The translations under genes and the position numbers were made by a program. A model generated the notes under the pieces. That model was not told the DNA's origin, ran no database searches, and was given only the letters and a program-made list of their open reading frames with translations. From sequence record NC_031010.1: DNA of 64,000 bases. One strand, written 5' to 3'. The number at the start of each line of letters is the position of its first letter. The first letter of the stretch is position 1. This document shows positions 6,730-26,731 of this stretch, piece by piece.

Positions 6730-6744
6730 TAGAGGCGTAACCGC

Positions 6745-7746: not shown

Positions 7747-7755
7747 GGAGCAGTC

Positions 7756-8697: not shown

Positions 8698-8708
8698 TGG
8701 AGTGAATC

Positions 8709-10140: not shown

Positions 10141-11130
10141 ATGGCTTTTACCTTGCGCTGGCGTAACGACAACACCAAACCGGTTGTCGTGCGCATTTAT
10201 CGCAGCACCACGGTTATCGACCCCACCAAGCTACCGGCCGCGCTGGCGACCCTCAGTAACGGGGAAACCGAGTGGACGGATACCACCGCGTTCTACGGGG
10301 TGACGTACTATTACTTTACCACCGTGACTAACCCCACTACCGGCAAAACCGTGAACGGGGTTAACACGCCCTACACCAACGAACAGCGGCGTGGGGTGGG
10401 ACCCAACACCTTGCAGTTTGGCACTGACATGTTGGGCTTCTACGGTGACGTGGTTTACGATGATCAGTTCCCACTGGGAGGTTTCCAGCAGAAGGTGCAG
10501 GATTTACTCCTCTCGGTGTCATCAACGTTTACTGCTGCTTACCGTTTCCCGGTCAGCAAATACGCCCGCAATGGAAAGATTCTCTATATTCCAAGCTCGC
10601 CGATTAGTTCTGGGTTGAGTTGGGCGGCGCTGTACGCCGCAGGAATGGTATACGGTACCGACGATGCCGGACCGGAGAACGGCCGTGGTAGTTTGACGGC
10701 AGCAGTACAAGATGCGTCATGTGTGTGGAAAGGGGATAAATACCGCATTCGTCTGATGCGGGGCTTGTCCGAATCTCCAAACACGCCGGCTTTTGCGTTC
10801 GATGCTAAGTACAACGGGGTGACGCACGACGCATCCGACCTGACGGGCTTTAATGAGTTCAATGACCTCTTTTATAGCACGCAGTATTTCTTCCCGGCCA
10901 AACGCCGCACCGACGGTTATCGTTTTGCTGCCCCGTTCACTACCACCAACAGTAACTACGCTGACGGGTATTTGACAATGGAGCACGACACAGCGTCGAA
11001 TAACATACTGACGCGCGGTACCATTACGTCGCCGATGTCGGCAGACTTACTGACCACCATTCGTTACCGCGGTCACGGCAGTGTTGTGACGGCGTGGGTG
11101 CCGGTCTTTGAATTAGTGGAGGACTACTAA
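10141..11130 (+). CDS. Putative virion fibre protein, cassette 2 subunit B
   Basis: Start reassigned to ATG 10141 (SD GAGGAG). MAFTLRW parallels MSFTLRW of 6745; shared FNEFNDL.Y, MEHD and FELVE. Confidence 0.65.
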   Translation: MAFTLRWRNDNTKPVVVRIYRSTTVIDPTKLPAALATLSNGETEWTDTTAFYGVTYYYFTTVTNPTTGKTVNGVNTPYTNEQRRGVGPNTLQFGTDMLGFYGDVVYDDQFPLGGFQQKVQDLLLSVSSTFTAAYRFPVSKYARNGKILYIPSSPISSGLSWAALYAAGMVYGTDDAGPENGRGSLTAAVQDASCVWKGDKYRIRLMRGLSESPNTPAFAFDAKYNGVTHDASDLTGFNEFNDLFYSTQYFFPAKRRTDGYRFAAPFTTTNSNYADGYLTMEHDTASNNILTRGTITSPMSADLLTTIRYRGHGSVVTAWVPVFELVEDY

Positions 11131-12029
11131 TGGGTATCAAACTGCAGTGGCCCTCACAGTCTGCCAAAGGCGTGAGTGGTCTTGAAATCTATCGCGGGAC
11201 GGGCAGCACCTCTACGTTAAATCGGAACAGTCTCCCTGCGCCGCTGACAACGCTTGCTGCAGATGCGACCTCATTTGAGGACACTACGGTTGTGGAGAAA
11301 ACCATCTACAACTACTGGGTGTGTTCCGTGAAGAACGGTGAGCGGGTGTTTACAAATCCCATTCAACGGGGTTATTATCTGGATACGGGTCCGGGGCCGA
11401 CGGAGTTGAAGTACGGGAACTGGGATGCGGGTTACTTTGGCACCGTTGCCGTCAGTGACCTGTTTACCTTTCAGGAAATGAACTCCCAACTGGGGATTTC
11501 TCTGTTCCAATACACGCCGGATTTCTATCACAAGTTTATCTTTAAAGGGCGCATTCTGTTCTACCCAAACATTCGGGTAATGGTTCAGACGTGGAGCAAT
11601 ATCTACTTAGCGGGCTTAGCATGGGGCAGCAATGCGGTCGCCTACATTAAACCCAACGGCCCGGCAGACACCCCACAAGGTCGTACCGTCAGCAAGAATG
11701 GTCGAGCGTATAACGTCCGCTTGCCGTTCAGTGCGGAATACAGTGTGACCGGTGGTCCTACCCTCAGCCAAGATGCAATTGCCAACTTGGGAGAGTGGCG
11801 AAACACGATGGAGCGGTTATTCCTCGTTCCTGGGACGATGTCGCGCTGGGGCAGTGCACCGCCGGATGTCCCGAGTAATACCTCGAGTCTCCAAACGACG
11901 ATGTTTGCACAAGCCTACGGCACGGCTAACATCTGGGTGGAACTTGGGGGTGCGCCGCAGGCCATTACCACAAACACCCAAAACCAAGCGATGTCCACTA
12001 TGCTGGTATTGGAATTGGTCTTACCGTAA
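11130..12029 (+). CDS. Putative virion fibre protein, cassette 2 subunit C
   Basis: Paralogue of 7756..8697: WPSQS, LDTGPGP, AGYFG, KGRI.FYPN and LELVLP. Confidence 0.65.
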   Translation: MGIKLQWPSQSAKGVSGLEIYRGTGSTSTLNRNSLPAPLTTLAADATSFEDTTVVEKTIYNYWVCSVKNGERVFTNPIQRGYYLDTGPGPTELKYGNWDAGYFGTVAVSDLFTFQEMNSQLGISLFQYTPDFYHKFIFKGRILFYPNIRVMVQTWSNIYLAGLAWGSNAVAYIKPNGPADTPQGRTVSKNGRAYNVRLPFSAEYSVTGGPTLSQDAIANLGEWRNTMERLFLVPGTMSRWGSAPPDVPSNTSSLQTTMFAQAYGTANIWVELGGAPQAITTNTQNQAMSTMLVLELVLP

Positions 12030-12031
12030 CA

Positions 12032-12084
12032 CAAATAAAAAGAACTACTCTCCCCAAAGGGAGAGTAGCCTTTATTTCTTTTTT
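12032..12084. terminator. Bidirectional terminator
   Basis: An A-tract, then CTACTCTCCC-CAAA-GGGAGAGTAG, then a T-tract, between convergent genes. Confidence 0.85.
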
Positions 12085-12173
12085 CCACCACCGAGCAGAC
12101 CGCCGACTGCGCCGACGACCGTCCCAACAGCAGAACCAACCCCACCCACGATGGCTGTGATGGGATCAGTCAC
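12072..12173 (-). CDS. 33-aa glycine-zipper-like peptide
   Basis: From GTG 12173: MTDPITAIVGGVGSAVGTVVGAVGGLLGGGKKK. It fills the gap between the upstream gene's stop and the terminator; the SD is weak. Confidence 0.45.
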   Translation of the reverse strand: MTDPITAIVGGVGSAVGTVVGAVGGLLGGGKKK

Positions 12174-12177
12174 GGGC

Positions 12178-12687
12178 TTAGTTGAACCCGTTGAGTTCTC
12201 CGTTGGTGCCGGAGAGGTCGGTTTTGGCTTTGCTAATCGTCCACACCACAGCTTCACCGGGGAGAAATTTGGCGTGACCGGCGTTGATAGCCACGGTCAC
12301 GTCCGTTTTGGTTGCGTCTTCTGCGTTAGCATTAGAGGTGATGGTGATGTCAGACAGTGCCAGTGCATCGTCCGCGTGGTCTTGCTGGAGCATGGTGTTG
12401 AAATGCGCGAGCACTTCTTCATCCGTATCCCAGTTGGTCATTGAATCCTCAACCGGCATGTCGCCTTTGGCGTACGCCAGACGGTTGTAGGTCAGTTCTT
12501 TTGACCCAGCGAAGTTGGTGCTTGAACCTTTGGCTGTGATAGTCAGCTTGGTGTTCTTCGCATCTTCTTCAGCGGCTGCAACAACGGCAGCAAAGTCAAC
12601 ATCAGCCACGGTCAGTGGCGTCGGGAGGCTCGGGTTCGCTGCGTTAAACAGCTCAACCAACTGCTCCTGTGGGGTTTTAGTAGCCAT
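12178..12687 (-). CDS. Short virion protein of the same paralogue family
   Basis: Start reassigned to ATG 12687 (SD AAGGGA). Motifs FNAANPSLP, KNTKL, TYNRL and end KTDLSGTNGELNGFN; acidic. Confidence 0.7.
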   Translation of the reverse strand: MATKTPQEQLVELFNAANPSLPTPLTVADVDFAAVVAAAEEDAKNTKLTITAKGSSTNFAGSKELTYNRLAYAKGDMPVEDSMTNWDTDEEVLAHFNTMLQQDHADDALALSDITITSNANAEDATKTDVTVAINAGHAKFLPGEAVVWTISKAKTDLSGTNGELNGFN

Positions 12688-13459: not shown

Positions 13460-14146
13460 CTACGCGACCGATTCCAAGTTAGCGTTCTCGAGAGCGATGC
13501 CTGGGTCGGTTAAGAAGGCACGTTTGATGTTACGGTACTTCACGTTGGTAGCTTCACCGGATTCTAACGCGTGGCGTTCACCGATCGGCACTGCCGGCTC
13601 AATGTACGGACGAAAGAACAGGTAGTTACGGGCGTACTCCACGGTAGACTCTTTGAACTCGGTGTAGTGGCAATCGGAGTTGTCATCGTTGTACGCTGAC
13701 TGGCCGAAGAGGTGCACGGCATCGTAGAACGACGCTGCAATCGCCTCGCCCACACCGGTGGCTTGCATGGTGCGCAAGAACATCAAGTCCGCAAAGTCTT
13801 TATCCACGGCCCCACTTAACCGTCCTGCTGGGGTGTCCGGGTAGGTGGCTACCGACGGGCACTTCTGGTACAGGAGGTCGTGCAGACATGCCGCCACCGC
13901 CCACGGGCCATTGGGTTTCAACACCGACTGAAGCATATCCGGGATACTCGCCATATCGGTGACAAACCCACGGGGTACTGTGATGTAGAACAGGTCATCA
14001 GGCAGCACACCCGTGAGCGACACCATACGGTCTAGCCCCGGGGCATTACGGTAGATTGTGCGTAGCGTAAACGGGTAGTGGAAATCCTGCGTCAGGATAA
14101 ACCATTTCCCCTCCAACACTTTATAAGTGAAATCCATCGGGCTCAT
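13460..14146 (-). CDS. DUF1353-family protein
   Basis: VPRGFVTDMASIP, AACLHDLLY, ADLMFLRTM and FYDAVHLFG match the family pattern. Confidence 0.8.
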   Translation of the reverse strand: MSPMDFTYKVLEGKWFILTQDFHYPFTLRTIYRNAPGLDRMVSLTGVLPDDLFYITVPRGFVTDMASIPDMLQSVLKPNGPWAVAACLHDLLYQKCPSVATYPDTPAGRLSGAVDKDFADLMFLRTMQATGVGEAIAASFYDAVHLFGQSAYNDDNSDCHYTEFKESTVEYARNYLFFRPYIEPAVPIGERHALESGEATNVKYRNIKRAFLTDPGIALENANLESVA

Positions 14147-14264: not shown

Positions 14265-14849
14265 CTAGCCAAATAAGGCCTTCGCGTAAGTACGCATTTC
14301 ACCCCAGATGCGACCCAACCAACCGTAGGTGAAGGTCTCGTTCGCTTTACGCTTCTCAGAGATATCCACGTAGTGGTAGGTCTGCATCCCGGTCAAACCA
14401 ACCAGCAGGTAATTCATGCCCTCTGCACCGCGTTTTGCGAAGAACGCTTTCAGTGCAGTCAGGGTCTTCGTTCCCATGCCTTTGTCAACCACGAGATCAG
14501 CGTAATGGGTCTCTTGGTTGTTCAGCACGTTCAGAAGACGTTGCAGAGATTCCACAGCGTTTGCACGACCGGCATTGATAGCATAGTCGAACAGACGGTC
14601 AGCCAGAAGCGGATTGAGGGCGAGGATATCATCCAGATAAAGCTTGTTCCACCAAAGTTTAACATAGATGTCTAACGCCGTTGACTGTGGCATCGAGACC
14701 ATGGGACCGGTGTAGCCATAATCCAGTGCCGTTGCTTTTGTGATGCCCCAGATGGTTTCACCACCGAGGTCGTTCTTGTTGTTGACATACCCCGCCTCGA
14801 TATTCACTTTGGCGCGGATGATGCCTTCTCGACTGAAACGGTCTGCCAT
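14265..14849 (-). CDS. Glycoside hydrolase family 108 lysozyme with peptidoglycan-binding domain (endolysin candidate)
   Basis: EAGYVNNKNDLGGETIWGIT (GH108 catalytic motif), LFDYAINAG, DKGMGTKTL and NETFTYGWL. Confidence 0.9.
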   Translation of the reverse strand: MADRFSREGIIRAKVNIEAGYVNNKNDLGGETIWGITKATALDYGYTGPMVSMPQSTALDIYVKLWWNKLYLDDILALNPLLADRLFDYAINAGRANAVESLQRLLNVLNNQETHYADLVVDKGMGTKTLTALKAFFAKRGAEGMNYLLVGLTGMQTYHYVDISEKRKANETFTYGWLGRIWGEMRTYAKALFG

Positions 14850-14907: not shown

Positions 14908-14941
14908 AATAAAAAGAAGAAAGGGTGCCCCGAAGGGCACC
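14908..14941 (-). terminator. Intrinsic terminator closing the fibre/radical SAM operon
   Basis: Minus strand GGTGCCC-TTCG-GGGCACC followed by CTTTCTTCTTTTTATTT. Confidence 0.9.
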
Positions 14942-14945
14942 ACTG

Positions 14946-15587
14946 TTATTCTACCGACGGATTAAACTCCGCCGCGTCGAGTGAGGCGTAATCCCCCTGC
15001 TCCGCAAATGCACGGATACGGGTTTTGTACGCGGTCAACTGAACGTGCAGCTGTGCGTTACGTGCGACAATCAGAGAGTACAGCATCTCAGTGTCTTTCG
15101 CTTCCCACTCTTCCAGCGCTTGGTTATCGGCAGTCACCCAATACTCCGGCACGGTGTTCGTTTGCACGAAGCCGGCCAGTGTGGTCAGGGTCTCACCTGC
15201 GGTCTGGAACATGTGGTCTTTGTACGCAATGTCAGCCGTGACCGCTTCACCGTACGCTGCATTAGTGGCCTGGAGTTTCTTGGCCAGCAGGGTATAGCAA
15301 TACGCTTTGGTCGACTGCAACTCTTTGAGGTAATCCTTCACCTGAATCCCCAGCACGTCTTTGATAAACGCTTTGGTTTGGCGTAGGGTGTAGTTGGCTT
15401 CGAACTGGGTCTGACCCTGCTCTTGCAACTGACGCAGTGCATCTTTCTCACTGAGTCCCTCTAAGAGTGCGTAGTGTAACCGCTTGGCCAGCGTAACTTC
15501 ACCGTTGGGGTCAAAGAACAACCCCGTGCGGTCAATCTGGCCATCGCCGTTTTCAAACCGAGCTTTTATCTCGTCAGCACTAAGCAT
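14946..15587 (-). CDS. Protein with C-terminal DUF4376-like (fibre-associated) domain
   Basis: IAYKDHMFQT...YWVTADNQAL...LIVARNAQLHVQLTAYKTRI...LDAAEF resembles the W.xADN pattern of DUF4376 proteins found beside phage fibre genes. Confidence 0.55.
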   Translation of the reverse strand: MLSADEIKARFENGDGQIDRTGLFFDPNGEVTLAKRLHYALLEGLSEKDALRQLQEQGQTQFEANYTLRQTKAFIKDVLGIQVKDYLKELQSTKAYCYTLLAKKLQATNAAYGEAVTADIAYKDHMFQTAGETLTTLAGFVQTNTVPEYWVTADNQALEEWEAKDTEMLYSLIVARNAQLHVQLTAYKTRIRAFAEQGDYASLDAAEFNPSVE

Positions 15588-16114
15588 TCTTTCTCTCCCA
15601 CGAATCCAACTTTGGTCAACATGTCATAGGACATGATTTCAAAGTCGATACGAAGATCCAGACGGTACTGCAAGTTCGGCAGTGGCTGGTCATTTTCTTG
15701 GAACGCCTGCATGAACATCATGTCATCGAAGTAATGACACGCGCTCTCTGGGTTACGCACCATCCAGACCGGGACATCCGGGAAGGACAGACACAGTGCC
15801 ACCAGAGAATCACCGCCACGATCGATGGTGCCGGTGCGCAGGATGTTTACCTTTGAAGCAGGGGCCGCCAGAATACGCGCTTCGAAACCCGGGTTACGCT
15901 TTTCGATTTCTGCTAACGAGTCGTGGCCGTTCTCCACGCACTGAATCGGCAGGACAACGTTAAGAGCAAAACGGTTAATCAAACGCAGCCAGTGATCGTT
16001 GAAATCATCGGCAGGCACGATAGCGTGAATGTTAAACAGCTTATAATGCTGTAAGAACGCTTCGATTTTGCGACTATCGTACTTCGTAAAATTCTGGAGA
16101 AGCAGGCTTTTCAT
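15566..16114 (-). CDS. Hypothetical accessory protein of the radical SAM cluster
   Basis: A 182-aa ORF overlapping both neighbours, suggesting translational coupling. Confidence 0.6.
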   Translation of the reverse strand: MKSLLLQNFTKYDSRKIEAFLQHYKLFNIHAIVPADDFNDHWLRLINRFALNVVLPIQCVENGHDSLAEIEKRNPGFEARILAAPASKVNILRTGTIDRGGDSLVALCLSFPDVPVWMVRNPESACHYFDDMMFMQAFQENDQPLPNLQYRLDLRIDFEIMSYDMLTKVGFVGEKECLVLTR

Positions 16115-17471
16115 TCTTGAATTGTTCCTTGCGGTCAGTTTGTTCCACAGCCATGGTCATCTCACGGATGGCGGTGACGTGTAAAGGCTGTTCTGCAGCT
16201 TCGCGGGTGAGTTTCTCTTCAACAGCAAAGTTGCGCTTCTGTTGGCACTGGTAACAGTTACAAACAGACTTGTCGTACTGCGATTCGTACGACCCGAAAC
16301 GTTGTTTCCACCACTGCGCCACTAAGAGCTTCGCGGTAGTCCAACCACACTGGCGACGTTCGCCGTGATACTCTTTACGAGCGTCTTCTTCACCGTCGCC
16401 GTTTTCATACGCTGCCGCCACACACGAGGCACACAGGTGCTTCGCTGGGCAACCGATGCACTGGTCAGGATACGACTTCCACTGTTCCTGAACTTCGGCC
16501 AGCAGTTTCCCGCCGTCGGTGTTAACGATTTGCTGACCTTCGAGTTTACCGATGGCCTGACGGGTGGTCACGGTAGACATGAAGCGGTTACACCCGAAGA
16601 TGTTCCGGTCAAAGCCCAGACAGGTCATGTACACCGTGGTACCGCAGTGAGGACGCAGACGTTGTGGGTCGTAGCGTACCGAGTCATCATGGATGAGCTT
16701 CTCACGCCAGTCCGGGTTCCACAGCTGGTCAACATCCAGACCGTCTGGCAGCACGTGACCGATTTCAGAGTTCTGGTCTAAGTGCAGACCCTTCTCAATG
16801 AAATACTCCGCTACTTCGATAAACTGGTTGGCAATCTCGAGTGCCATCTGGCGCGGTAACACGTCTTCGAAGACCACGTTACCGTACAGACGACCGCCCC
16901 CGGTCACATCAATCAGCGACTTCATCCCAGCACCGTACTGCATCAGCGTTTCTTTCGTGAAGGTGGCTTTGACCCCAATCTCACGAACGCCAATTTCTTG
17001 CAGAAGCTTATAACCGGCGACCGCTGCTTGGTAAGACCCTTGACGGGACGTGGTGAAGATACGGTACTTATCGTGGGTCTCAGGCAGACCATCGATAGAG
17101 ACACCGATCGACAGGTAATCTTTCCAACGGTTCAGAATCTCCAGCGCCAGCGGTTTGTCAAACAACGTCCCGTTGGTGGAGATAGAGAACACGTAAGGCA
17201 GGTTGTGCTTTTTGCACAGCTCTTCTGCGGTTTCGAAGGCCGCTTTCAGCAGCTTCGGCTGCATGAAGGGTTCGCCACCGATGATATCAATGATGATACC
17301 GTCGATACCTTGGTTCTTCGAGAAGAAGCGATGTTTATCGCGATTAAAGCAGGCGTGAATAAAATCAACGACATCAGCGACTTTGTTATTACGCGGATAC
17401 TTACGCTCGTAGCAATACTCACAGTCGAGGTTGCACGATAGGTTGGTGACTATCTGGTAGGTTGCATCCAT
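16074..17471 (-). CDS. Radical SAM/SPASM peptide maturase (CXXX-repeat target type)
   Basis: CNLDCEYC (CX3CX2C), GGEP, ISTNGT, VSIDG; SPASM cysteines HCG...GCNRF and CIGCPAKHLCASC...QCGW; extra C-terminal CNCYQC. Confidence 0.92.
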   Translation of the reverse strand: MDATYQIVTNLSCNLDCEYCYERKYPRNNKVADVVDFIHACFNRDKHRFFSKNQGIDGIIIDIIGGEPFMQPKLLKAAFETAEELCKKHNLPYVFSISTNGTLFDKPLALEILNRWKDYLSIGVSIDGLPETHDKYRIFTTSRQGSYQAAVAGYKLLQEIGVREIGVKATFTKETLMQYGAGMKSLIDVTGGGRLYGNVVFEDVLPRQMALEIANQFIEVAEYFIEKGLHLDQNSEIGHVLPDGLDVDQLWNPDWREKLIHDDSVRYDPQRLRPHCGTTVYMTCLGFDRNIFGCNRFMSTVTTRQAIGKLEGQQIVNTDGGKLLAEVQEQWKSYPDQCIGCPAKHLCASCVAAAYENGDGEEDARKEYHGERRQCGWTTAKLLVAQWWKQRFGSYESQYDKSVCNCYQCQQKRNFAVEEKLTREAAEQPLHVTAIREMTMAVEQTDRKEQFKNEKPASPEFYEVR

Positions 17472-17483
17472 CCCTATCTCCCC

Positions 17484-18368
17484 TTATTTTTTAATTGGAT
17501 TAAGCCAGTTCATGATGTAACGGTAGCCGTGCTCACCGATGGCCAGTGCAATCTTGTTGCAGCCACGGTCCACGACCATCTCAACGTTCTCAGGAACTTG
17601 CAGGTCGCCATTCGGTTGACTGACGATAATTTCACTACAGGCATTACACGCATCTTCTTCGAAGAACTTCTCGAGTTTGATGATGGTGTCACGCTTGTTA
17701 ATGCGGTTGAGCTTACGCATGTTGTCTTGCAGACGCTCAAAGCCGTACACGAAGTTTAACACGTGGTCAGGCGACAGCACTTTCTTCATCTGGTTATCGA
17801 ACAGGTAGTTCATGCCGAGGAAACCAAGATGGTGAATGGCGTCTTGCATTTTCATCATGCCTTCGTGCCAGCGCATGTCCCCGATCTTCTCACGGGTTAA
17901 CACTGACCAGAGGATAACGTTGTCCAGCTGGGCGATGACTTCAAACGCTTCGGTATCACCGGAACGAGCAAAGTCCATTAAACCACGGGCATCATCTTCG
18001 TAACCGTCGATGGAGACCACAACACGATGGAAGGTTTTCAAAAACTCGACTTGCTCTAAACGTAACTTACGTCCGTTTGTGAAAAGATAGTGCACGGCAG
18101 AAGGACGTTCTACGCGCATCATCTCGACCGACTCAACGAGTTTACGGTAAGACAGTAACGGCTCACCCCCCGTCCAGATGATCTCTTCCACACCGGGATT
18201 CTTTTTCAGTAACTCCATCATTGCCTCTTCATGGGTTTTACGAGACACGTCCCCTTTGACCATGTGAATCTCACCCGCACAAAACGAACAATTGAGGTTA
18301 CACTTCGACGTCAATGCTACGTTAATGGTCTTTGCAGGTGAGTAAACATCTTTACTTAACGTTCTCAT
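17484..18368 (-). CDS. Second radical SAM protein with a short Cys-containing C-terminus
   Basis: CNLNCSFC, TGGEP, FTNG, VSIDG; C-terminal ACNAC...PNGDL...GCN. Confidence 0.88.
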   Translation of the reverse strand: MRTLSKDVYSPAKTINVALTSKCNLNCSFCAGEIHMVKGDVSRKTHEEAMMELLKKNPGVEEIIWTGGEPLLSYRKLVESVEMMRVERPSAVHYLFTNGRKLRLEQVEFLKTFHRVVVSIDGYEDDARGLMDFARSGDTEAFEVIAQLDNVILWSVLTREKIGDMRWHEGMMKMQDAIHHLGFLGMNYLFDNQMKKVLSPDHVLNFVYGFERLQDNMRKLNRINKRDTIIKLEKFFEEDACNACSEIIVSQPNGDLQVPENVEMVVDRGCNKIALAIGEHGYRYIMNWLNPIKK

Positions 18369-19278
18369 CCGTCATTCCGTACAGGCGACGTTGGAAAGAG
18401 AACAGTGGGTCGGTGTCTCGTACATCTTCACCCGCCTTCAACAGACGTGGTGAGCGATACGCATCGTACAGTGCGTTAAGAACGGATTGACGCTCACCCA
18501 TGCGGATAAGGTCGTCCAGTTCAACCGGGGACGAAATAAACGGTTCCAGCGCAGCCTGTTGTTCTTCGGTGAACTCTTTCAGCTGTGACTGGAGCAGGAA
18601 GCGAATCAGTTTGCGATCATCCGCCGTGGAGTTCGGGACAGCGCCAAACTCAGTCTGACAGAGATAGGCCATCCACGGTTTACGGATGCGGAGTGTTTGC
18701 GCATGCGGGTCTGCGATGTAGACCCACTCTTGCTTCTCTGCATCCCATGCAAACTTATAACTAAACGCGAGTAAGTCTGCCAAGCAGTCGATATTCGCGG
18801 CTTCAAGGCCAGAGAACGGGTGATACATTTCACGGTCTTTCTCCACGCTTCCAGTGCCGGCTTCCACCAGTTTGAATAAGTGGGACCAGCTTCCGCAGTA
18901 ATCGCTGCTGTAGCTACGCACGCACACCGGACGCATGCCGAGTTCTTTAAAGGACTCGAACATCAGTTCCAGTGGTGCACTATAGTTCAGTACCGAATCT
19001 GTGAAAAAATACTTGTCGTTGACAAGCTTCCCGGTAAAACCAGAACCGCCTAAGGCGAACTGAATGGATTTCACGTTCAGCTTGCCCACCGTGGCCGCAT
19101 CAATCACGGTGTACTCTTTTTTCGTAAAGTTGCGACCGCGAAGCTTAGGCCATTCAAACTGATCCATGGCAATCAGCCGCAGCTCGTCGTTGATGTGTGC
19201 GTTAACACTGTCCGGTGACGAGATGTGAATTGGGTAATTCATGCTCGTGCGGTACGCAAGATGATCGTTACTCTTCAT
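18352..19278 (-). CDS. Hypothetical accessory protein of the radical SAM cluster
   Basis: A 308-aa ORF with SD AGGGG, lying between the precursors and the radical SAM genes and overlapping the latter. Confidence 0.7.
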   Translation of the reverse strand: MKSNDHLAYRTSMNYPIHISSPDSVNAHINDELRLIAMDQFEWPKLRGRNFTKKEYTVIDAATVGKLNVKSIQFALGGSGFTGKLVNDKYFFTDSVLNYSAPLELMFESFKELGMRPVCVRSYSSDYCGSWSHLFKLVEAGTGSVEKDREMYHPFSGLEAANIDCLADLLAFSYKFAWDAEKQEWVYIADPHAQTLRIRKPWMAYLCQTEFGAVPNSTADDRKLIRFLLQSQLKEFTEEQQAALEPFISSPVELDDLIRMGERQSVLNALYDAYRSPRLLKAGEDVRDTDPLFSFQRRLYGMTDENVK

Positions 19279-19290
19279 TAGGTTCCCCTG

Positions 19291-19500
19291 TTAACTCGGG
19301 AAGGAGACTGATTTCGCACCGCCTGAGCTACTCCAGCTACAGGTTCCGCCGCAGTTGTACGCGCCAGCACGAATCCCACCCAAGTTGTTGGTGTTGTTAC
19401 ACGTTCCACGGTTGGCGATATAATCAACCGCCTGTCCCGTGGTAATATAGCGTTCGATGCTCGCCACGCGGTTACCGATGTCTTTCAAGCTTACTGCCAT
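19291..19500 (-). CDS. Short Cys-containing precursor-like peptide P3
   Basis: MAVSLK leader, NTNNLGG box and CGGTCSW core motif; SD AGGAG. Confidence 0.8.
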   Translation of the reverse strand: MAVSLKDIGNRVASIERYITTGQAVDYIANRGTCNNTNNLGGIRAGAYNCGGTCSWSSSGGAKSVSFPS

Positions 19501-19509
19501 AGCCTACTC

Positions 19510-19938
19510 CTACGGTCCAGAACAGCCTGCTCCACAACTCCCGCCACAGCCACTACCGCAACTTCCCGAGCACCCGCCAGAACATTTGCCTGAACAGTTA
19601 CCCGAGCATGTGCCAGAACAACCGCCGGAGCAGCCGCCGCCACAGTTACCGCCACAGCTGCCACTACAACCACCGGTGCAGCTAGATGAACAGTTGCCCG
19701 AACAGGATGACGAACACCCAGACGAGCAGTTACCCGTACAGCCACCGGAACAGCCGTTACCACACGTCCAGCTACAAGAGCCGTTACAGTGCAGTGCCGC
19801 TGGGGTGAAGCCGTTGAGTAAATCAGCATTATTAGTAGTGCGTCCACCGATGTAGTTTTGCACGCCTGCTTCAGTTTTTAGTGCGGTGTTCTCAATATTG
19901 ACAACACGGTCACGCACCGATTTTAATGAAATCGCCAT
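19510..19938 (-). CDS. CXXX-repeat precursor-like peptide P2
   Basis: A 50-aa leader (MAISLK...NADLLNG) plus 23 perfect CXXX units rich in Gly/Ser, ending CSGP; SD AGGAG. Confidence 0.9.
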   Translation of the reverse strand: MAISLKSVRDRVVNIENTALKTEAGVQNYIGGRTTNNADLLNGFTPAALHCNGSCSWTCGNGCSGGCTGNCSSGCSSSCSGNCSSSCTGGCSGSCGGNCGGGCSGGCSGTCSGNCSGKCSGGCSGSCGSGCGGSCGAGCSGP

Positions 19939-19946
19939 TTCCGCTC

Positions 19947-20336
19947 CTAAGGGCTGCTACAACCAGCACTGCAGTTACTGCTACAGGTGCCAGAGCAACC
20001 GCTAGAGCAGCTGCTGCCACATGAACCTGAACAGCCGCTTGAACAGCCACCAGAACACGAGGATGAGCAACCTCCCCCGCAACCACCAGAACACGAGCCC
20101 GAACAGTTACCTGTACACACGCCGCTACAGCTTCCTGAGCAGCTCGAGCAACCGTGACTACAACCTGACGAACACGTCCAACTGCACGACCCGTTACAAC
20201 GGGCCCACGTATCAGGTTGGCCTGCCAATAGATTCGCATTGTGAACTTTGCTGTTCACCTGCCCCTCTACGGACGCGCCGGTTGCTGCTTGGACTCGGTC
20301 AAGACGGGCACTTAGTTCTTTAAGTGATATCGCCAT
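19947..20336 (-). CDS. CXXX-repeat precursor-like peptide P1
   Basis: A 46-aa leader (MAISLK...NANLLAG) plus 21 Cys (20 CXXX units and one CXX), ending CSSP; SD AAGGGAAGG. Confidence 0.9.
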   Translation of the reverse strand: MAISLKELSARLDRVQAATGASVEGQVNSKVHNANLLAGQPDTWARCNGSCSWTCSSGCSHGCSSCSGSCSGVCTGNCSGSCSGGCGGGCSSSCSGGCSSGCSGSCGSSCSSGCSGTCSSNCSAGCSSP

Positions 20337-20356
20337 TACCTTCCCTTTTTAATAAG

Positions 20357-20390
20357 ACACGGGCACTCGCCATATAGACGAGGCCCGTGT
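20357..20390 (-). promoter_or_regulatory. Inverted repeat with TATG in the loop, upstream of P1
   Basis: ACACGGGC/GCCCGTGT and CTCG/CGAG stems; the minus-strand loop reads TCTATATGG. Confidence 0.45.
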
Positions 20391-20399
20391 GTAATTATA

Positions 20400-21605
20400 T
20401 TAACGTGAACCGGCATCAGCCTGTACATCGTCACGTGTGGTCAAGTTGGCGTTGACGTGCACGTTTGCCTGAACCACGCCGCCATACTGCTTGTGCAGGT
20501 ACTGGGTGTGTGGATCGGCTGCAGACAGGTGGTTAGCGAGCGTCTGGTTAACACTGGCGATGTTGCCCTCGGTCGTGGTGACACGACGGGTCAGTGCGGT
20601 CAGGTCAACACGCAGCTGGTCAATCTGCTGCTGTGCGTCACCGGCTCCGGACTTGAGGTCATCAATCTGGTCTTGCAACCCAACGGCCGTTTGCTTCAAC
20701 TCATTCACGGTTTTCTGTAACGTCAATACCAGTGAATTGAGGTTGGCCACAATCAACGTCATCTTCTGGTAGTTTTGGTCTACCGTGTTCAGTTGGTCGT
20801 TGAAGGTGGTCAGCGAACTGACGATGGCATCAATGCGCCCACCCAGTGCCGTATCAGCAGCCTTAAGGTCGCCAATCTGGACGAGGGTTGCATCGATAGC
20901 TGCCTGCACGCCGGCAATCAACGCACGGATTTCGGTTGCGGTCAAACCATCAATATCGTGGATATCAAGGTTGTGCACGTTACCCGTGGCATTGATGTGG
21001 GCATTCAGCGCGTCCAAGAAGTTATTCTTGATATCGCCGATGATGTCTTTGATTTTCTCAAGCTGAACGGCATCGCCTGAACCAATCGCATCCAGAATAC
21101 CCGAGAGCAGGGTAATGACGTATTCAAAACCAAAGATATCGCCAACGTCTTTAAACGCCGGGGCACCCGGTAGCGTATCCGGGAAATCGATTAAGTCGGC
21201 AAAGTTCACCTTCTTATTATCAATGCCCAGAATCGCAATCGCATTTTCAATCGCAGTCACGTTCGCAGACATTGGCCCACCGACAACCTGAGCGGTCACG
21301 ATGATGTCTGTTGGGATGCTGCTGTTGGTCACTACAACTGCCATCACGACTTCTTTGTTGCCCGAGAGCTTCATGTAGGCCGGATGAGCGAAAATCAGTT
21401 CGTAGTCGGTACCACGTTTATACGGCGTGGTGGGCGAGTTCGTGGCACGCAGTTTAAAACTGTCTGCGTAAAACGGACCTGCCGGAAAAGCAAAAGACCG
21501 GTTAACTTTACCGGAACCCAAGACCACGGGGATACTTACCGCGTTCGATGTCAGAGTTCCTTTAAGGTCAAGCGGATACTGGAAAATAATATCACTCATC
21601 TCCAA
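20400..21605 (-). CDS. Virion fibre-like protein with long coiled coil
   Basis: Shared N-terminal PFY...G.DY domain, HINATGNVH, a long heptad region and C-terminal HLSAADPHTQY (phage fibre motif). The start may be ATG 21599. Confidence 0.7.
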   Translation of the reverse strand: MEMSDIIFQYPLDLKGTLTSNAVSIPVVLGSGKVNRSFAFPAGPFYADSFKLRATNSPTTPYKRGTDYELIFAHPAYMKLSGNKEVVMAVVVTNSSIPTDIIVTAQVVGGPMSANVTAIENAIAILGIDNKKVNFADLIDFPDTLPGAPAFKDVGDIFGFEYVITLLSGILDAIGSGDAVQLEKIKDIIGDIKNNFLDALNAHINATGNVHNLDIHDIDGLTATEIRALIAGVQAAIDATLVQIGDLKAADTALGGRIDAIVSSLTTFNDQLNTVDQNYQKMTLIVANLNSLVLTLQKTVNELKQTAVGLQDQIDDLKSGAGDAQQQIDQLRVDLTALTRRVTTTEGNIASVNQTLANHLSAADPHTQYLHKQYGGVVQANVHVNANLTTRDDVQADAGSR

Positions 21606-21643: not shown

Positions 21644-24600
21644 TTAAGACGACAAATTACTCGTTGGGATTAACATAAGATTGATGGTTACCTCACCCAG
21701 CGTGACCATCTTTCCGTCAGGCCCGAAGAACTTCGAGGCGACAACGACTTCCCGGTTCGACCCATTCGCCCGCTCCAAGAACGGCGGACAATAGCTGATT
21801 TCCGGAGCCACCACACTCACTACCCCTGTGGTGTTTGCCACCGGAACATAGACATGGGAGACGGTCTCCAACACGTTGAGGTTACCGGACTGCGTACCCT
21901 GGTCTGAGGTGAATGCCACCACCGATGTCCCGCTCGAGCGAATTAACTCGCGCTCGGTCGTCCCGTTCCAATCGTAGGCAATAAAGGCAATGTGGCAGAT
22001 GGTGCCACCGGCGGTACCTGCCTGAATGACTTCGATCCCAACCGTGTGCTGCCCGTTAGACACCGGGAAGTCCTGGGTGGCGAGCGCGTTTGACCCGTTC
22101 GAGGTAATGCCGGATGCCACACGCACGCCATCAATGTAGACGTGACACATGTCATCCACCGCAAACTTAAGTCGCAGCGTGCCCCCGGTGGTGGTCACTT
22201 TGAACTTGGTCGCATACGTACCGTAGCCCGGAATCGTCCGTGGGTTGATGTCAATCCAGATAAGCCCCAACGCATTTGCATCCGGGTTCTCCGCTGCTGT
22301 CACGGCCACTGCACGGGCAGGAGCCCAGAACAGCTCAGGCAACACTGCCCCGGAATACCACGGCTGGGAAGCCGGGACATAACGGTTAATCAGCGGACGA
22401 GACAACAATGATCCCACCGCCAGTGACAGTGCGGACTGACCCACGTACCCATCACCCGAGGTCGCAATCGGTAACGGTTCCAGCAGACCGAGCGGTGACT
22501 CTGCCCGTTCACGCACCACGTTCGAGCCGTGGCTGTACGCAACCCCCTCATGCTCCTCTAACTGACGTACCGCCCCCAGACGTTTCACCGGGGTAATGTT
22601 CTCCTCGATGATACGGCTGCTGTCGGTCTTGACGTAACCCACGTAAAGCAGGTTACTGCTGTCAGGGTAACGTTCGGTACTGACCCGGTACCGCGCCTTC
22701 GTGGTGCCTTCGTCTGGGTAGACTTCAGCGTGGAAATAGAAGGTCTGGTTTCGGTAGTCACTGAACGCCGACGAGAAGTCAATGCTGTACTGGTCGAGCA
22801 CGTACTCTTTCGAGTTAATGAACAGTCGCTCTGACTCGGTCAGGTAAAGAATCCACCCTTCCGCCGTCTTCACGCCCGCCAACACCACCGGTTGCGCATT
22901 CGCCGGGGAACCAAACGGACTGGCCATGAAGTCCGCAATCGGATACGCGTCGCCTGAGGAGAACACCGGGTCCAGTTTGAAATACGAATTCACCATCGCA
23001 TTCAAATCTTTCACCCACACCCACGTGTTTGGGCTGTACGTTGGTCGGTCAAGCCCCAGTGCCCCGGTGGAGCTGGTCCACTGGTTACCGGTCAGGGTCA
23101 ACACCGCACGGAAGTTCAATGCACCCCCATTCCCGACTTGGGCGATACGCAGCACGGACGGCAGATAGAGCACAAACTTCTGCCCATCGTTGGACACGAG
23201 TTGCGGCTGACCAAAGCGGCGGTCTTTTCCACCAAAGCTGAAATCCAATCCGACGTTGGCGATGTTCAAGTCAAGGTCGTTCTGGAACGTCAACAGTTGG
23301 AGGGTGCTGGAGCTAAACGCGAGAATCCCGTTGGAAACCGACGGGTACATCACAAAGTAGTAATGGTCGATTTTATTCACACCGTCTACAAAGCGTTGTG
23401 CCGTGGCCTGTCCCAAGAAGAGCTGCTGCGGTGTCCCAATCGCAAAGCCCCACAGTGCGACATACAGTTTCCCGATTTGGTCAGCGGCCATCAGTCGCTC
23501 GGATGCGTAGCCGTTCGCTGCACCCGCTGGGGCGTTAGCCAACATGATACTGCGGACTTTCGCCCACTCGGTATCGTTCAGCGTCAGTTTGTCGGCGGTA
23601 AAGTTCGGGTTCCCGGTCACGTTCTTGTACTGCACCGTTTCAGGCTTAGTAAAGAAGCACCCGTTCAGCGTGCCTTTATCTGCCGCATTCACTTTCACCA
23701 TCGCCAGCTGGGACATCGCAGCGTAGGTTGCCGTGGTGATAACACGCCGGTTGTTGGTTGGACCAAAGCCCCCGTAACCCGGTACGTCGTAATCCGTGTC
23801 GGTTGAATACAACACCTCAACGCACAACGCATCCTTGGTACCGGTGAGCCAGATGGCTTTAGAGTCCCCACCGAAGAACAGCGGGTAGGCCATGCCAGAG
23901 GCGTACACAGACCCACGTCCTTGGTCGAGTTTGGTGGTGTTACCCACAACCGCACCTGTCGTCACATCGGCTGACAACGAGTCGTAATGGTCACCCCCGC
24001 CCGGAACACCCATCGTGACTATCTGCACCGGGACATCACTGTCATTACCAACCGAAAGCACAGCGACCTTGTCATCGTGGTGTGCCACAAAGGCACGCTG
24101 GTTGGCTTGGGTCCCTGTCCACTTCAGTGGGTAGTTCGTGGTCAACAAATCCACGCCGGTTTTGTACTTCGCACCGGTATCCAGTAACTGCAGTGGGAAG
24201 ATTTCCGGGTGCTCCAGTGTCACCGTCAGGGTATCGAAGTCGAGCGTGAATGTCGTGTACCAGTTCTTGAAGCTCAATGACTCGGTTGCTTTCGCCAGCC
24301 AAATCGTTGGCGTCATTGCCACCCGTAACACTTCATCCTCTTGCCCCAACACCCGGTTACACGTTGGCCCGTGCACCAGATTGCGCCCTACCGTGAAGGT
24401 ACTGAGTGCGGCTGGGCTGATGTACGCTACCCGGTCGGTCTCGGTGTTGGCGGTGTCGTACCCCCCTTCGGCACGGAGCAGTAACCACGAACCTGCCACG
24501 CCCTTCATCCCGTTCAAGGTTTCAAGGGTAAAGGCCACGTCTTGTGCGCCGATGCTATTGAGTGAAACCGACGCCAAGGCCACACGGTAACTGTCGTTCG

Positions 24601-26731
24601 CCAGTCGGGTGCGCAGCAGATACACTTTACTGCCGTAGACCACGAGGTCATCCGTTTCCCCGGCGGGCACCATTGCCGCATTACTGCCTGCCACATCCAT
24701 GATGGTCGGGAACGTCACTCGCACCACATTCAGGTGGCGATTGTGGTCGGCTGTCCCGGCGAGGTCAACGAGGTAATACGCCCCGTCGCTGCCTAAACAG
24801 ATAAGGGCATCCTGCCCCGGCACCACCACTGCACTGAGTGTCACCCCCGGGTACTTGGTGGTCATCCCGGCTGGCTGATAGCGCTGTGAAGTTTGTTGGA
24901 CGTTGCTGAGCGTGTTGTCGTCGTTAAAGGTACCGTAAGCGTAATAGATGTGGCGATCAGTCAGACCGTCCGTTCCGTTACGCAGAATATACAACCGGTC
25001 CCCTTCAAAACGCATCGCCCCGTAGAACTGGCTGTTGTTCTTGCCATACCCTTCGTAGTTACCCTGTGCCGGGATAGGCAGGAACCCGAGGTTGCCGTAC
25101 GACGCCCCAATAACCGCCCACGTTGGAATCAGACCGTTGGCTTTGCTTTCCAAATCCGCCAAAGTCTTCTCAAAGAGATACCCCTGTTTAGCCGTCACCA
25201 CACGGTCTGTGCTGGCATCGATAATATCCCAGAGTAACACCAAGCCGGCTGCCGAAGAGCTGGCGTAGGGTACGTTGGTCACGTCTGCGAGGGTATGGGT
25301 GTGGTTGGTCAGGGATTTGTTGGCCACGGCGGCGGTTAACGCTTTGGTTACCGGCTTATCAAGCGGTGCGGTGTTCTGCATCTTCTCGACACCGACGTCC
25401 GCAGGCGTCAGGGTTAAGGTCTGGTCTGCATCAAAACCTTTGCCGTTGACGGTGTAAGTGTCATCGACGTAGTTCCCCAGCAAATCCCGCATCGCGGTAA
25501 TACCCGCCTGTGAAATTGCATAACCGTCACTGAGTGAGGTACGGTTGGACGTGACCTTGATCAGACCCCGCACCCCCACTGAGGCTTCGGGCAGGTTCGC
25601 TTCCAGACGGAACGGGGCGTAGGACTTGCCTGACCCGTAGACCTTCACGGTTTCCGTAGAGGACATGTACGCGTTAGCTGCTTTGAGTTTCACCTCGTGC
25701 AGGTACATCTCCACCATGTCGGGTGTAATCAAATACACCCCGTTGAAGACCGGAGCCAATGCATCAGGGCCCGAGTGCACCATTAAGGTGTTCAGCCCCG
25801 CTGACATCTCCACCGCCACACCCGGGTTCGTGTTCGCACTGTCTGCGGTGAACCGTAAAGTCTTTTTGGTGGAGACCAACACGTTCGGCCCTTTGAAGGT
25901 GATAACGTGGTCGTTGTTGGCGGTGGTGTACGTCAGGACATTGTTGTTGAGAACACGCAAGCGACCGAACACGTCATTAAACGCGGTGTCGTTACGCATC
26001 AGCAAATCAACGTGCTTTTGCTGCAAACCGGTTGTGGCCATCAGGGTCACGAGCTGGTCAATGGTGCGACCAAATGCCCGGGTGGCGTCCACGGCTTTAT
26101 CCGTGACCTTCAAGGCCCCGATGTCATCCGCAGTGTACGAATGCCCGTGGGACTTCAGCAGGTGGTGCTGATACATCCCATCGTCGAACACTTTCTTGCC
26201 GGTTTGATAGATGAGCTCAGTGACTTCACTGTACGCGGCATCCATGTCCCCTGCCCGCTTAATCAGGCCCAAACGAATGTCATTTAACGCGGAGACAATC
26301 TCATCGCGGGCAATGGCTTCGTCCAAGTCCTGTGGCGGGTCGATAGCTGGAATGGTCGGCGCATAGCGCATCAACGCAGACCAGTCTTCGTTACGGGGGT
26401 CTTTCAGGTCACTGCTGACCAGCCATTTGCCAATCTCGCTCTGCGGTACGCGGTAATCACGCCCCACAGCGTAGATGCTGTATTTGATGGCATCGTGGTT
26501 CAGCAGCATTATCCCGCCAAACACCGCGGCTTGGAATGCCTCAGCGGCTTCTTTGTAATAGTAGCCGAGGTAATAGTCCATGCCCTCGATAAGCGGGACA
26601 TCATTTAAATCGGTGATAACCAGCCCGGTGCGGTAGAAAGGGCCTTCCGGCGGAATAACCGTATTGAAACGGTTTGGGAACGTCGAGACTTTCAACGTGC
26701 CTTCAAACTGGGCCGGGGTTTCCGTCGCCAT
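21644..26731 (-). CDS. Long tail fibre protein (1695 aa)
   Basis: N-terminal GPFY...GMDY; fibre repeats PEASVGVRGLI and PYASSSAAGLV; TPADVGV..NTAPLDKPV; C-terminal lectin/PA14-like segment AVDDMCHVYIDG...GQHTVGIEV. Confidence 0.8.
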   Translation of the reverse strand: MATETPAQFEGTLKVSTFPNRFNTVIPPEGPFYRTGLVITDLNDVPLIEGMDYYLGYYYKEAAEAFQAAVFGGIMLLNHDAIKYSIYAVGRDYRVPQSEIGKWLVSSDLKDPRNEDWSALMRYAPTIPAIDPPQDLDEAIARDEIVSALNDIRLGLIKRAGDMDAAYSEVTELIYQTGKKVFDDGMYQHHLLKSHGHSYTADDIGALKVTDKAVDATRAFGRTIDQLVTLMATTGLQQKHVDLLMRNDTAFNDVFGRLRVLNNNVLTYTTANNDHVITFKGPNVLVSTKKTLRFTADSANTNPGVAVEMSAGLNTLMVHSGPDALAPVFNGVYLITPDMVEMYLHEVKLKAANAYMSSTETVKVYGSGKSYAPFRLEANLPEASVGVRGLIKVTSNRTSLSDGYAISQAGITAMRDLLGNYVDDTYTVNGKGFDADQTLTLTPADVGVEKMQNTAPLDKPVTKALTAAVANKSLTNHTHTLADVTNVPYASSSAAGLVLLWDIIDASTDRVVTAKQGYLFEKTLADLESKANGLIPTWAVIGASYGNLGFLPIPAQGNYEGYGKNNSQFYGAMRFEGDRLYILRNGTDGLTDRHIYYAYGTFNDDNTLSNVQQTSQRYQPAGMTTKYPGVTLSAVVVPGQDALICLGSDGAYYLVDLAGTADHNRHLNVVRVTFPTIMDVAGSNAAMVPAGETDDLVVYGSKVYLLRTRLANDSYRVALASVSLNSIGAQDVAFTLETLNGMKGVAGSWLLLRAEGGYDTANTETDRVAYISPAALSTFTVGRNLVHGPTCNRVLGQEDEVLRVAMTPTIWLAKATESLSFKNWYTTFTLDFDTLTVTLEHPEIFPLQLLDTGAKYKTGVDLLTTNYPLKWTGTQANQRAFVAHHDDKVAVLSVGNDSDVPVQIVTMGVPGGGDHYDSLSADVTTGAVVGNTTKLDQGRGSVYASGMAYPLFFGGDSKAIWLTGTKDALCVEVLYSTDTDYDVPGYGGFGPTNNRRVITTATYAAMSQLAMVKVNAADKGTLNGCFFTKPETVQYKNVTGNPNFTADKLTLNDTEWAKVRSIMLANAPAGAANGYASERLMAADQIGKLYVALWGFAIGTPQQLFLGQATAQRFVDGVNKIDHYYFVMYPSVSNGILAFSSSTLQLLTFQNDLDLNIANVGLDFSFGGKDRRFGQPQLVSNDGQKFVLYLPSVLRIAQVGNGGALNFRAVLTLTGNQWTSSTGALGLDRPTYSPNTWVWVKDLNAMVNSYFKLDPVFSSGDAYPIADFMASPFGSPANAQPVVLAGVKTAEGWILYLTESERLFINSKEYVLDQYSIDFSSAFSDYRNQTFYFHAEVYPDEGTTKARYRVSTERYPDSSNLLYVGYVKTDSSRIIEENITPVKRLGAVRQLEEHEGVAYSHGSNVVRERAESPLGLLEPLPIATSGDGYVGQSALSLAVGSLLSRPLINRYVPASQPWYSGAVLPELFWAPARAVAVTAAENPDANALGLIWIDINPRTIPGYGTYATKFKVTTTGGTLRLKFAVDDMCHVYIDGVRVASGITSNGSNALATQDFPVSNGQHTVGIEVIQAGTAGGTICHIAFIAYDWNGTTERELIRSSGTSVVAFTSDQGTQSGNLNVLETVSHVYVPVANTTGVVSVVAPEISYCPPFLERANGSNREVVVASKFFGPDGKMVTLGEVTINLMLIPTSNLSS

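Follow-up and report, generated by a model that had tools for sequence, protein, structure and literature searches.

Cysteine-repeat proteins and radical SAM enzymes encoded beside the fibre genes of Erwinia phage vB_EamM_Kwan, a candidate fibre maturation system

This work deals with a module of eight genes located in a stretch of 64,000 nucleotides of the sequence record NC_031010.1 (the window), which encode three small proteins with conserved cysteine motifs (P1, P2 and P3), two radical S-adenosylmethionine (radical SAM) enzymes (rSAM1 and rSAM2) and three accessory proteins (g308, g182 and g213). The source DNA was identified as Erwinia phage vB_EamM_Kwan (246 kb, Wellingtonvirus; 100% identity in the region), and the same region is 98.7% identical to that of the phage Wellington and 82% identical to that of pEa_SNUABM_11. 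Positions in the window are those of the Kwan record minus 124,000. According to the list of open reading frames (ORFs), the genes follow the order P1, P2, P3, g308, rSAM1, rSAM2, g182 and g213 on the minus strand, with spacers of 8-12 nt and three junctions overlapping by 17, 41 and 22 nt, and a Shine-Dalgarno sequence is found before each of P1, P2 and P3. The P genes and the radical SAM/SPASM maturase gene belong to one operon and lie about 2 kb apart. A preliminary description of this DNA, made without database searches, had reported eight tightly coupled minus-strand genes closed by a UUCG terminator, and both points were confirmed, with all the ORFs in place and a stem-loop read as GGUGCCC-UUCG-GGGCACC (14941-14908) followed by a U-rich tail. 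The pairing of the Cys-repeat proteins with the enzymes is real and conserved.

The P1 protein has an N-terminal region of about 46 amino acids (MAISLKELSARLDRV...), followed by the sequence CNGSCSWTC and by a tail composed mostly of C-[ST]-G-x repeats. It contains 21 Cys, with 19 of the 20 spacings between them at i+4, and P2 contains 23 Cys with all 22 spacings exactly at i+4. P3 shares the N-terminal layout of P1 and P2 and carries a CGGTCSW motif, ends shortly beyond this CxGxCSW junction and is devoid of the repeat tail, so that the earlier claim of three Cys-rich precursors applies to P1 and P2 and fails for P3, which has only 3 Cys. Among 44 distinct tails of the whole family, i+4 spacing was found in 718 of 888 cases and i+3 in 140, and the residues placed between the Cys were Ser (36%), Gly (33%), Thr (14%), Ala (5%) and Asn (5%), with Asp and Glu together reaching 0.4%. 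The repeat unit is C-[S/T]-G-x, with Ser or Thr at position +1 in 75% and Gly at position +2 in 56% of the units. The alignment of 57 distinct P proteins has revealed three orthologous groups (P1, P2 and P3), each of them kept across genera, which have in common a collinear N-terminal part of about 48 residues and a near-invariant G-x7-C-x-G-x-C-S-W-x-C junction. The family TIGR04114, correctly named in the preliminary description as a CXXX-repeat target family with TIGR04115 as its maturase, has a cut-off of 20 bits that was passed by P1 (23.7 bits) and P2 (24.4 bits), and no match to it was obtained for P3. The three proteins matched phrog_6085 (E-values of 7e-28, 5e-35 and 7e-25 for P1, P2 and P3, respectively).

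The public annotation is wrong over most of the P1-P3 stretch. In RefSeq, the place of P1 is occupied by the wrong-frame ORF gp184 (19910-20239, minus strand) and that of P2 by the opposite-strand ORF gp183 (19478-19855, plus strand), the call for P3 (gp182) being the sole correct one of the three. P2 is not called in the public record of pEa_SNUABM_11, and in the SPN3US record the P1-P3 stretch holds only the wrong-frame gp166 (L003, 6910-7245, minus strand). The records of CR5, Caitlin, Huxley and phiEaH2 also contain wrong calls over P1 and P2, similar to those of Kwan and SPN3US. A codon-by-codon comparison of Kwan and pEa_SNUABM_11 (82% identity) has been carried out in each frame. In the Cys-rich frame, 72 of 100 changes in P1, 75 of 103 in P2 and 23 of 38 in P3 fell in the third codon position, and the ratio of synonymous to non-synonymous codon changes was 58:20, 68:13 and 16:11, respectively, while non-synonymous changes prevailed in all other frames over P1-P3. 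This third-position bias and the excess of synonymous changes therefore show selection to act on the Cys-rich frame. The three ORFs recur, with equal lengths and motifs, in SPN3US, CR5, Caitlin, Huxley and phiEaH2.

The two radical SAM enzymes predicted from the letters alone were corroborated by PF04055 scores of 55.3 bits for rSAM1 and 46.7 bits for rSAM2 (threshold 29.5 bits) and by a CxxxCxxC motif in both proteins. The best NCBIfam match of rSAM2 was TIGR04115 (profile positions 7-341 of 359), followed by PapB (NF047865; 107.3 bits against a cut-off of 340). The link to this family raised in the preliminary description is thus real, but a score of 113 bits against a cut-off of 350 makes rSAM2 a sister group of that family and not a member. 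Further matches were found to TIGR03906 (65.8 bits) and to the anaerobic sulfatase maturase (55 bits). In an alignment with distant homologues, the invariant Cys of rSAM2 are C19/C23/C26 together with C265, C273, C283, C325, C328, C334, C337 and C357. The designation of this enzyme as a SPASM protein is sustained by these SPASM-type Cys, although PF13186 itself was not reported by Pfam. The nearest solved structure by sequence in the PDB is CteB (5wgg, E 1e-9), 4k37 being matched as well, and rSAM2 lacks an N-terminal peptide-recognition domain, because its sequence starts directly at the radical SAM motif. In rSAM1, the CxxxCxxC motif is formed by C23, C27 and C30, and the conserved C-terminal set C241-x2-C244...C270 probably binds a single auxiliary (Twitch-like) cluster, as judged from the sequence. 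Its best NCBIfam matches are weak (PapB, 49.2 bits against 340, and HxsC), and its nearest solved structures in the PDB are SkfB (6efn, E 8e-6) and YydG.

Homologues of g308 are encoded in the loci L009, L010, L011, L013, L015 and L167, described below, and this protein is a system-specific marker that travels with rSAM1 and rSAM2. Its AlphaFold2 model has a predicted local distance difference test (pLDDT) score of 86.6 and a predicted template modelling (pTM) score of 0.82, and a fold search in PDB and BFVD gave only its own orthologue and no informative match. A function of g308 as an element recognising peptides that are ribosomally synthesised and then modified after translation (RiPPs), or as a chaperone, was considered and left unsupported by this search. 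The g182 protein is present in the jumbo class and in L010. Its model (pLDDT 87.4) gave weak partial matches to beta/alpha-barrels (E~3e-3), the radical SAM protein QueE among them, and our guess from the model is a degenerate radical SAM-like core devoid of the cluster Cys; its SPN3US orthologue gp162 was undetected in SPN3US virions. The g213 protein had been described as DUF4376-like. The Kwan protein itself gave no Pfam match to DUF4376 at E<=0.1, but the orthologue gp161 of SPN3US, 33% identical to g213 (E 8e-36), passes PF14301 (DUF4376) with 36.9 bits against a cut-off of 25, and the orthologue in L169 belongs to PF14301 too. None of the eight proteins matched a peptidase or transporter/exporter family in NCBIfam, Pfam or PHROGs. 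Lanthipeptide and thiazole/oxazole chemistries were rejected, as no dehydratase, cyclase or YcaO is encoded in the cluster.

A tblastn search located rSAM2 in 76 and g308 in 62 phage records, which without exception belong to SPN3US-like jumbo phages, with hosts of the genera Erwinia, Salmonella, Cronobacter, Escherichia and Proteus. In every SPN3US-like locus examined with profile hidden Markov models the order was g401, P1, P2, P3, g308, rSAM1, rSAM2, g182 and g213. The module thus forms a constant component of the SPN3US-like phages and is not a peculiarity of Kwan, which modifies the earlier view that such a system is unusual in a lytic jumbo phage. An additional rSAM1 paralogue is inserted between P1 and P2 in two metagenomic contigs of SPN3US-like jumbo phages (L020, 2560-3471; L033, 2561-3472). 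Radical SAM homologues that usually occur apart from Cys-rich ORFs had been named beforehand as an observation that would speak against the system; a Cys-repeat ORF in the same strand and within 3 kb of the rSAM2-like gene was found in 44 of 48 loci, and a contig edge cuts short three of the remaining four. A search of 185,579 species-representative bacterial and archaeal genomes was carried out with an alignment as the query, its first sequence being the rSAM2 of L009. The best relative was 29% identical to this protein and resembles a TIGR04115-type prophage, the remaining matches were generic SPASM proteins devoid of Cys-repeat neighbours, and a bacterial twin or origin of the Kwan-type module was not found among these genomes.

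In Kwan and in the SPN3US-like phages the module comes after the virion protein g401 and giant fibre candidates. The g401 gene lies directly upstream, is syntenic in all the jumbo loci and adjoins the module in L010 as well. The N-terminal domain of its product (phrog_2163) is common to two giant fibre candidates located downstream of it on the plus strand, the 1695-aa protein of Table 1 and the one encoded at 26819-30853, and its C-terminal half is rich in coiled coils. The g401 protein is a candidate partner of the P proteins. In SPN3US, gp168-170 are baseplate/tail-fibre candidates missing in tailless particles (PMC5694885, PMC5105663). An endolysin gene (14265-14849), a small ORF and an annotated tail assembly chaperone gene (13460-14146) are located just past the terminator, and the fibre module consequently runs into lysis and chaperone genes.

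Relatives outside the jumbo phages were reached through distant rSAM2 homologues (35-45% identity) and through a scan of IMG/VR with an rSAM2 alignment. The fused fibre proteins of L009, L011, L013 and L014 were not resolved by Pfam, and domains were assigned by PHROGs in L009, L013 and L014. In the P2-like myovirus L009, the genes for GpU, gpW, gpJ and gpI are followed by those for a 236-aa protein, rSAM1, a g308-like protein and rSAM2. Residues 1-72 of the 236-aa protein match the tail-fibre PHROGs 4209 and 3100 and residues 66-176 match phrog_6085, and the protein ends in a long C-terminal Cys-repeat tail that starts with CANGCSWTC. Another P2-like locus, L013, contains genes for a tail protein, a tail fibre, a 206-aa protein, a 401-aa protein, rSAM1, g308, rSAM2, the sheath and the tape measure, the 401-aa protein combining tail-fibre/minor-tail PHROG matches with a P-domain tail. 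In the lambda-like L015, the gene for the central tail fibre J precedes those for a 247-aa Cys-tail protein, g308, rSAM1, rSAM2 and an endolysin, and the Cys-tail protein terminates in ...YYRCSGC[ST]WTC... plus Cys repeats; L011, L016 and L017 have the same core with a 255-aa Cys-tail protein (255-aa protein, g308, rSAM1, rSAM2), the flanks having been read in L015. The T7-like L167 (3-5499) and L168 (5117-10517) encode a 206-aa Cys-tail protein, a radical SAM enzyme, a g308-like protein and another radical SAM enzyme, and then a lytic transglycosylase, an M15 endolysin and T7-type packaging genes. The collagen-repeat protein encoded before the Cys-tail gene in these two loci was taken as a T7-type tail fibre only by eye. 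The T7-like contig had been binned with a metagenome-assembled genome of Cloacibacillus. A 568-aa virion-type protein of L014 (by its PHROG match) has the same Cys tail, and in L010, P1-, P2- and P3-like genes are present in a module of changed order, adjoined by S74-type fibres and a g401 homologue. The P domain of the fusions includes positions 10-50 of the phrog_6085 profile, which correspond to the region that would be the leader of a precursor peptide. With fusions of the kind found in L009, L013 and L014, the P domain recurs in fibre proteins of several independent architectures, where it is internal or C-terminal.

Phages also carry the named family TIGR04114/TIGR04115 itself. The 46-kb viral contig L040 encodes a radical SAM enzyme that scores 385.8 bits on TIGR04115, over the cut-off of 350. 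Its gene is directly preceded by those for the baseplate hub, baseplate V, wedge and tail fibre and directly followed by those for three TIGR04114 proteins. In these three proteins the Cys repeats are N-terminal and are followed by a conserved C-terminal domain of about 110 aa. The Peptidase_S74 intramolecular chaperone is a hallmark of tail fibres, and in more distant radical SAM loci (CTCNCNY)n repeats stand immediately before this domain. In L058-L086, which represent another phage family of Cys-repeat proteins, those with (C[TL]CNCNY)n repeats before Peptidase_S74 share an 'ER.RRG' motif; as many as four paralogues stand in tandem, and three or four radical SAM genes lie upstream of them.

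Table 1. Location of the genes and features discussed in the text. Positions in Kwan are those of the window, and the remaining ones are those of the locus indicated.
Sequence	Feature	Position	Strand	Description and basis
Kwan	P1	19947..20336	-	129 aa; ORF, TIGR04114, phrog_6085, codon-position bias, Cys spacing
Kwan	P2	19510..19938	-	142 aa, P1 paralogue; ORF, TIGR04114, phrog_6085, codon-position bias, Cys spacing
Kwan	P3	19291..19500	-	69 aa, short paralogue; phrog_6085, alignment
Kwan	g308	18352..19278	-	308-aa accessory protein; phrog_8030
Kwan	rSAM1	17484..18368	-	294-aa radical SAM enzyme; PF04055
Kwan	rSAM2	16074..17471	-	465-aa radical SAM enzyme, SPASM-type C-terminal Cys; PF04055
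Kwan	g182	15566..16114	-	182-aa accessory protein; phrog_7988
Kwan	g213	14946..15587	-	213-aa accessory protein, SPN3US gp161 orthologue; phrog_8169
Kwan	Intrinsic terminator	14908..14941	-	Operon end; 7-bp GC-rich stem, UUCG loop, U-rich tail
Kwan	g401	20400..21605	-	401-aa virion structural protein, SPN3US gp167 orthologue; phrog_2163, RefSeq annotation
Kwan	1695-aa protein	21644..26731	-	Baseplate/tail-fibre candidate, SPN3US gp168 orthologue
L040	TIGR04115 enzyme	5767-7152		
L040	Three TIGR04114 proteins	7153-7860, 10612-11286, 12035-12619		
L073	Example of the L058-L086 family	7185-7883		
L077	Example of the L058-L086 family	7189-8115		
L084	Example of the L058-L086 family	7218-9275		
L085	Example of the L058-L086 family	7219-9783		

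Among the systems already known, the TIGR04114/TIGR04115 pair, defined by comparative genomics, resembles the Kwan module in its tandem Cys at every fourth residue encoded beside a radical SAM/SPASM enzyme that lacks an N-terminal recognition domain. The Kwan type differs in the addition of rSAM1 and g308, both missing in the L040 type, and in the layout of the targets, which in Kwan comprise an N-terminal handle, a CxGxCSWxC junction and a C-terminal tail, whereas the repeats of the L040 targets are N-terminal. No characterised product of these families was found in the literature, in agreement with the preliminary description. The SPASM enzyme PapB makes one thioether per repeat at the six CXXXD motifs of PapA (PMC12373016). 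PapA, from this freyrasin system of the ranthipeptide class, shares with P1 and P2 the tandem C-x3 repeats, and PapB is the best family of rSAM1 and the second-best of rSAM2, but with scores (49 and 107 bits) far under the 340 of the cut-off. PapB links Cys to Asp, with Glu accepted, while in the Kwan tails Asp and Glu are nearly lacking and the residue at i+4 is Cys, and the six repeats of PapA contrast with the 21-23 repeats, two enzymes and phage fibre context of the Kwan system. In the comparison with CteB/SCIFF and SkfB, which are peptide maturases forming thioethers and the nearest enzymes of solved structure, the auxiliary-cluster Cys are conserved in rSAM2 and rSAM1, respectively, yet only the radical SAM core aligns, and rSAM2 is devoid of the N-terminal peptide-recognition domain. 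QhpD offers a precedent, being a SPASM enzyme that forms Cys thioethers not in a freed peptide but in QhpC, a subunit retained in a larger assembly, the quinohemoprotein amine dehydrogenase. Similarity to this pair, seen in the TIGR03906 match of rSAM2, is weak, and QhpC is a periplasmic, enzymatic, non-repeat and non-viral protein with Cys-Asp/Glu links. Regarding fibres, the Cys repeats precede S74 domains in the distant radical SAM loci, and in L009, L013 and L014 the P domain takes the place of the distal fibre portion. Adhesins of the T4-type gp38 kind carry Gly-rich repeats, rich in small residues, at the fibre tip. The P proteins of Kwan differ from S74 and gp38 fibres in having neither S74 nor a detectable fibre domain. 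No fibre known to need radical SAM enzymes was reported in the literature searched, and neither a description of this system nor any connection of tail fibres with radical SAM/SPASM enzymes was found there, a 2026 review of jumbo phages being silent on radical SAM, RiPP, cysteine and thioether.

A structural product is favoured because the module has a fibre context in five kinds of phage, because the P domain is fused to fibre proteins, because neither a peptidase nor an exporter is encoded, and because P1, P2 and P3 form a fixed set. In this reading, to which a probability of about 0.55 is given, P1-P3 are small proteins associated with the fibre, not precursors of a free peptide, and the module is their dedicated maturation system. 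The P proteins would be made late, along with the baseplate and fibre gene products. Their N-terminal part of about 48 residues, in which a predicted short helix and an 'N-N-x-x-L-x-G' element are combined with the invariant C-x-G-x-C-S-W-x-C junction, would serve as the recognition handle for the enzymes, possibly via g308, and would probably be kept in the mature protein for oligomerisation or attachment. With the help of its auxiliary Fe-S clusters, rSAM2 would use a 5'-deoxyadenosyl radical to connect the sulfur of each repeat Cys with a carbon atom in a neighbouring residue (Ser, Thr, Gly or Asn), giving about 20 consecutive small thioether rings in a stiff rod resistant to reduction and proteases, and rSAM1 may act on the junction motif, the only Cys motif of P3, or form a second type of link. 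The g182 and g213 proteins would be helpers specific to the jumbo class and excluded from the virion, and the three P paralogues might, speculatively, assemble into a hetero-oligomer through their N-terminal helices. We infer the thioether chemistry because the nearest characterised relatives of the enzymes form Cys thioether bridges. The division of tasks between rSAM1 and rSAM2 and a virion location of P1-P3 are inferred too, while the gene set, the coding frame, the Cys periodicity, the family relations, the synteny and the fusions with fibre proteins in the relatives are shown. By analogy with PapB, one thioether per repeat would be the most economical chemistry, and the acceptor must differ from that of PapB and be Ser, Thr, Gly or Asn, because the acidic residues are absent.

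The published mass spectrometry of SPN3US virions, searched against an annotation that omits P1-P3, is mute on these three proteins. In that work gp160 and gp167-170 were detected and gp161-166 were not, the absence of gp161-165 being expected if they are enzymes and helpers. The tables of SPN3US amber mutants hold zero mutations in the genes 161-166, from a screen that was not saturating and is mute on essentiality.

Several considerations weigh against fibre proteins as the product. P1-P3 themselves matched phrog_6085 as their sole PHROGs family and carry no recognisable fibre domain. Their place in virions is a prediction, as they are not in the proteomics databases built on the public records because of the mis-annotation. 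The thioether chemistry is a prediction, and the residues used as acceptors by PapB, Asp and Glu, make up 0.4% of those between the Cys. The role of g308 as recognition partner is a guess, because the protein has no recognisable fold. The neighbourhoods of tail-fibre and lysis genes are common sites of cargo genes too, and a conserved N-terminus followed by a variable repeat core is exactly how RiPP precursors look.

This last resemblance is the basis of the strongest alternative, which is considered unlikely, namely that P1-P3 are leader-core precursors whose cross-linked core is freed from the leader by a protease of the host, or by another one yet to be identified, and released at lysis as an antibacterial, anti-competitor or signalling peptide. 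The several paralogous precursors with a conserved N-terminal region and a repeat core, and the kinship of the enzymes with the maturases PapB, CteB and SkfB, agree with it; a lytic phage would need no exporter, and the P proteins are unreported in virions, although they were outside the search database. Against this alternative stand the fusions, in which the P domain, with its 'leader' part, is internal or C-terminal in tail-fibre and virion proteins, and the position of the module within the fibre block of jumbo, P2-like, lambda-like and T7-like contigs as well as of L040. The cluster also lacks a peptidase, the persistence across genera of three orthologous groups of P proteins is easier to reconcile with a constant structural set than with a weapon under diversification, and the sactipeptides and ranthipeptides known to us are far smaller than cores of 80-90 residues with 21-23 Cys. 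From the RiPP-like system first proposed, the chemistry is thus upheld by the enzyme and substrate families, and the free peptide has become the less probable product owing to the fusions, the location and the missing peptidase and exporter.

Somewhat less probable still is an outcome in which the Cys of the tails do not become thioethers, or act as metal or Fe-S ligands along the fibre, or undergo another chemistry, such as conversion of Cys to formylglycine, an epimerisation like that of YydG or a Cys-Trp link at CSW. Iron ions bound by His are present in the tip of the T4 long fibre, and anaerobic sulfatase maturases convert Cys to formylglycine. The match of rSAM2 to one of these maturases (55 bits; PDB 4k37) and that of rSAM1 to YydG point in this direction, as do the lack of the usual acidic acceptors, the invariant Trp of the junction and a content of Cys, Gly and Ser similar to that of metal-binding proteins. 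Against these signs, the best families of the enzymes are thioether maturases of Cys-repeat peptides (TIGR04115, PapB and CteB), the sulfatase-type motifs (C-x-P/A-x-R) are absent from the P tails, and the strict i+4 spacing with Ser or Thr at +1 (75%) looks like a repeated unit of enzyme recognition.

Finally, the idea that the Cys-rich ORFs are chance frames in a G+C-rich stretch of low complexity and that the deposited annotations are real, suggested by several open frames on the same DNA and by the choice of other frames in RefSeq, is excluded by the codon-by-codon comparison, in which bias and synonymous excess are confined to the Cys-rich frame, and is further opposed by the lengths and motifs conserved across genera, the ribosome-binding site of each P gene, the phrog_6085 and TIGR04114 matches and the failure of virion mass spectrometry to detect the wrong-frame gp166.

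Either as fibre parts or as a free peptide, the product is open to a direct test for which co-expression and mass spectrometry suffice. Should the product be released as a free peptide, it would represent a phage-made RiPP of unusual size, poly-cyclic and conserved across a whole group of lytic jumbo phages. If the fibre proposal is true, overlooked genes would be added to model phages, SPN3US being a genetic model in whose public annotation P1-P3 are missing or mis-called. Some 20 consecutive thioether rings in a rod would then amount to a novel protein material, resistant to reduction and proteases, with a bearing on fibre survival in harsh environments and on adsorption. In terms of enzymology, Cys-repeat targets of SPASM maturases are already known, and it is to phage biology that a fibre matured by radical SAM enzymes would be new. 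The odds are put at even that thioether-stapled Cys-repeat fibres constitute a previously unrecognised class of modified virion proteins, matured by dedicated phage radical SAM enzymes, and that the TIGR04114/04115 systems are fibre-maturation systems and not pathways to natural products; with chances judged equally balanced, the class would then extend over jumbo myoviruses, P2-like myoviruses, lambda-like siphoviruses, T7-like podoviruses and (pro)phages of the Firmicutes type. A biological role would thereby be given to TIGR04114/04115, an uncharacterised family predicted as 'RiPP', and, should the P proteins be cross-linked parts of the fibre, they would provide the first case, to our knowledge, of a phage employing radical SAM chemistry in the construction of its own virion.

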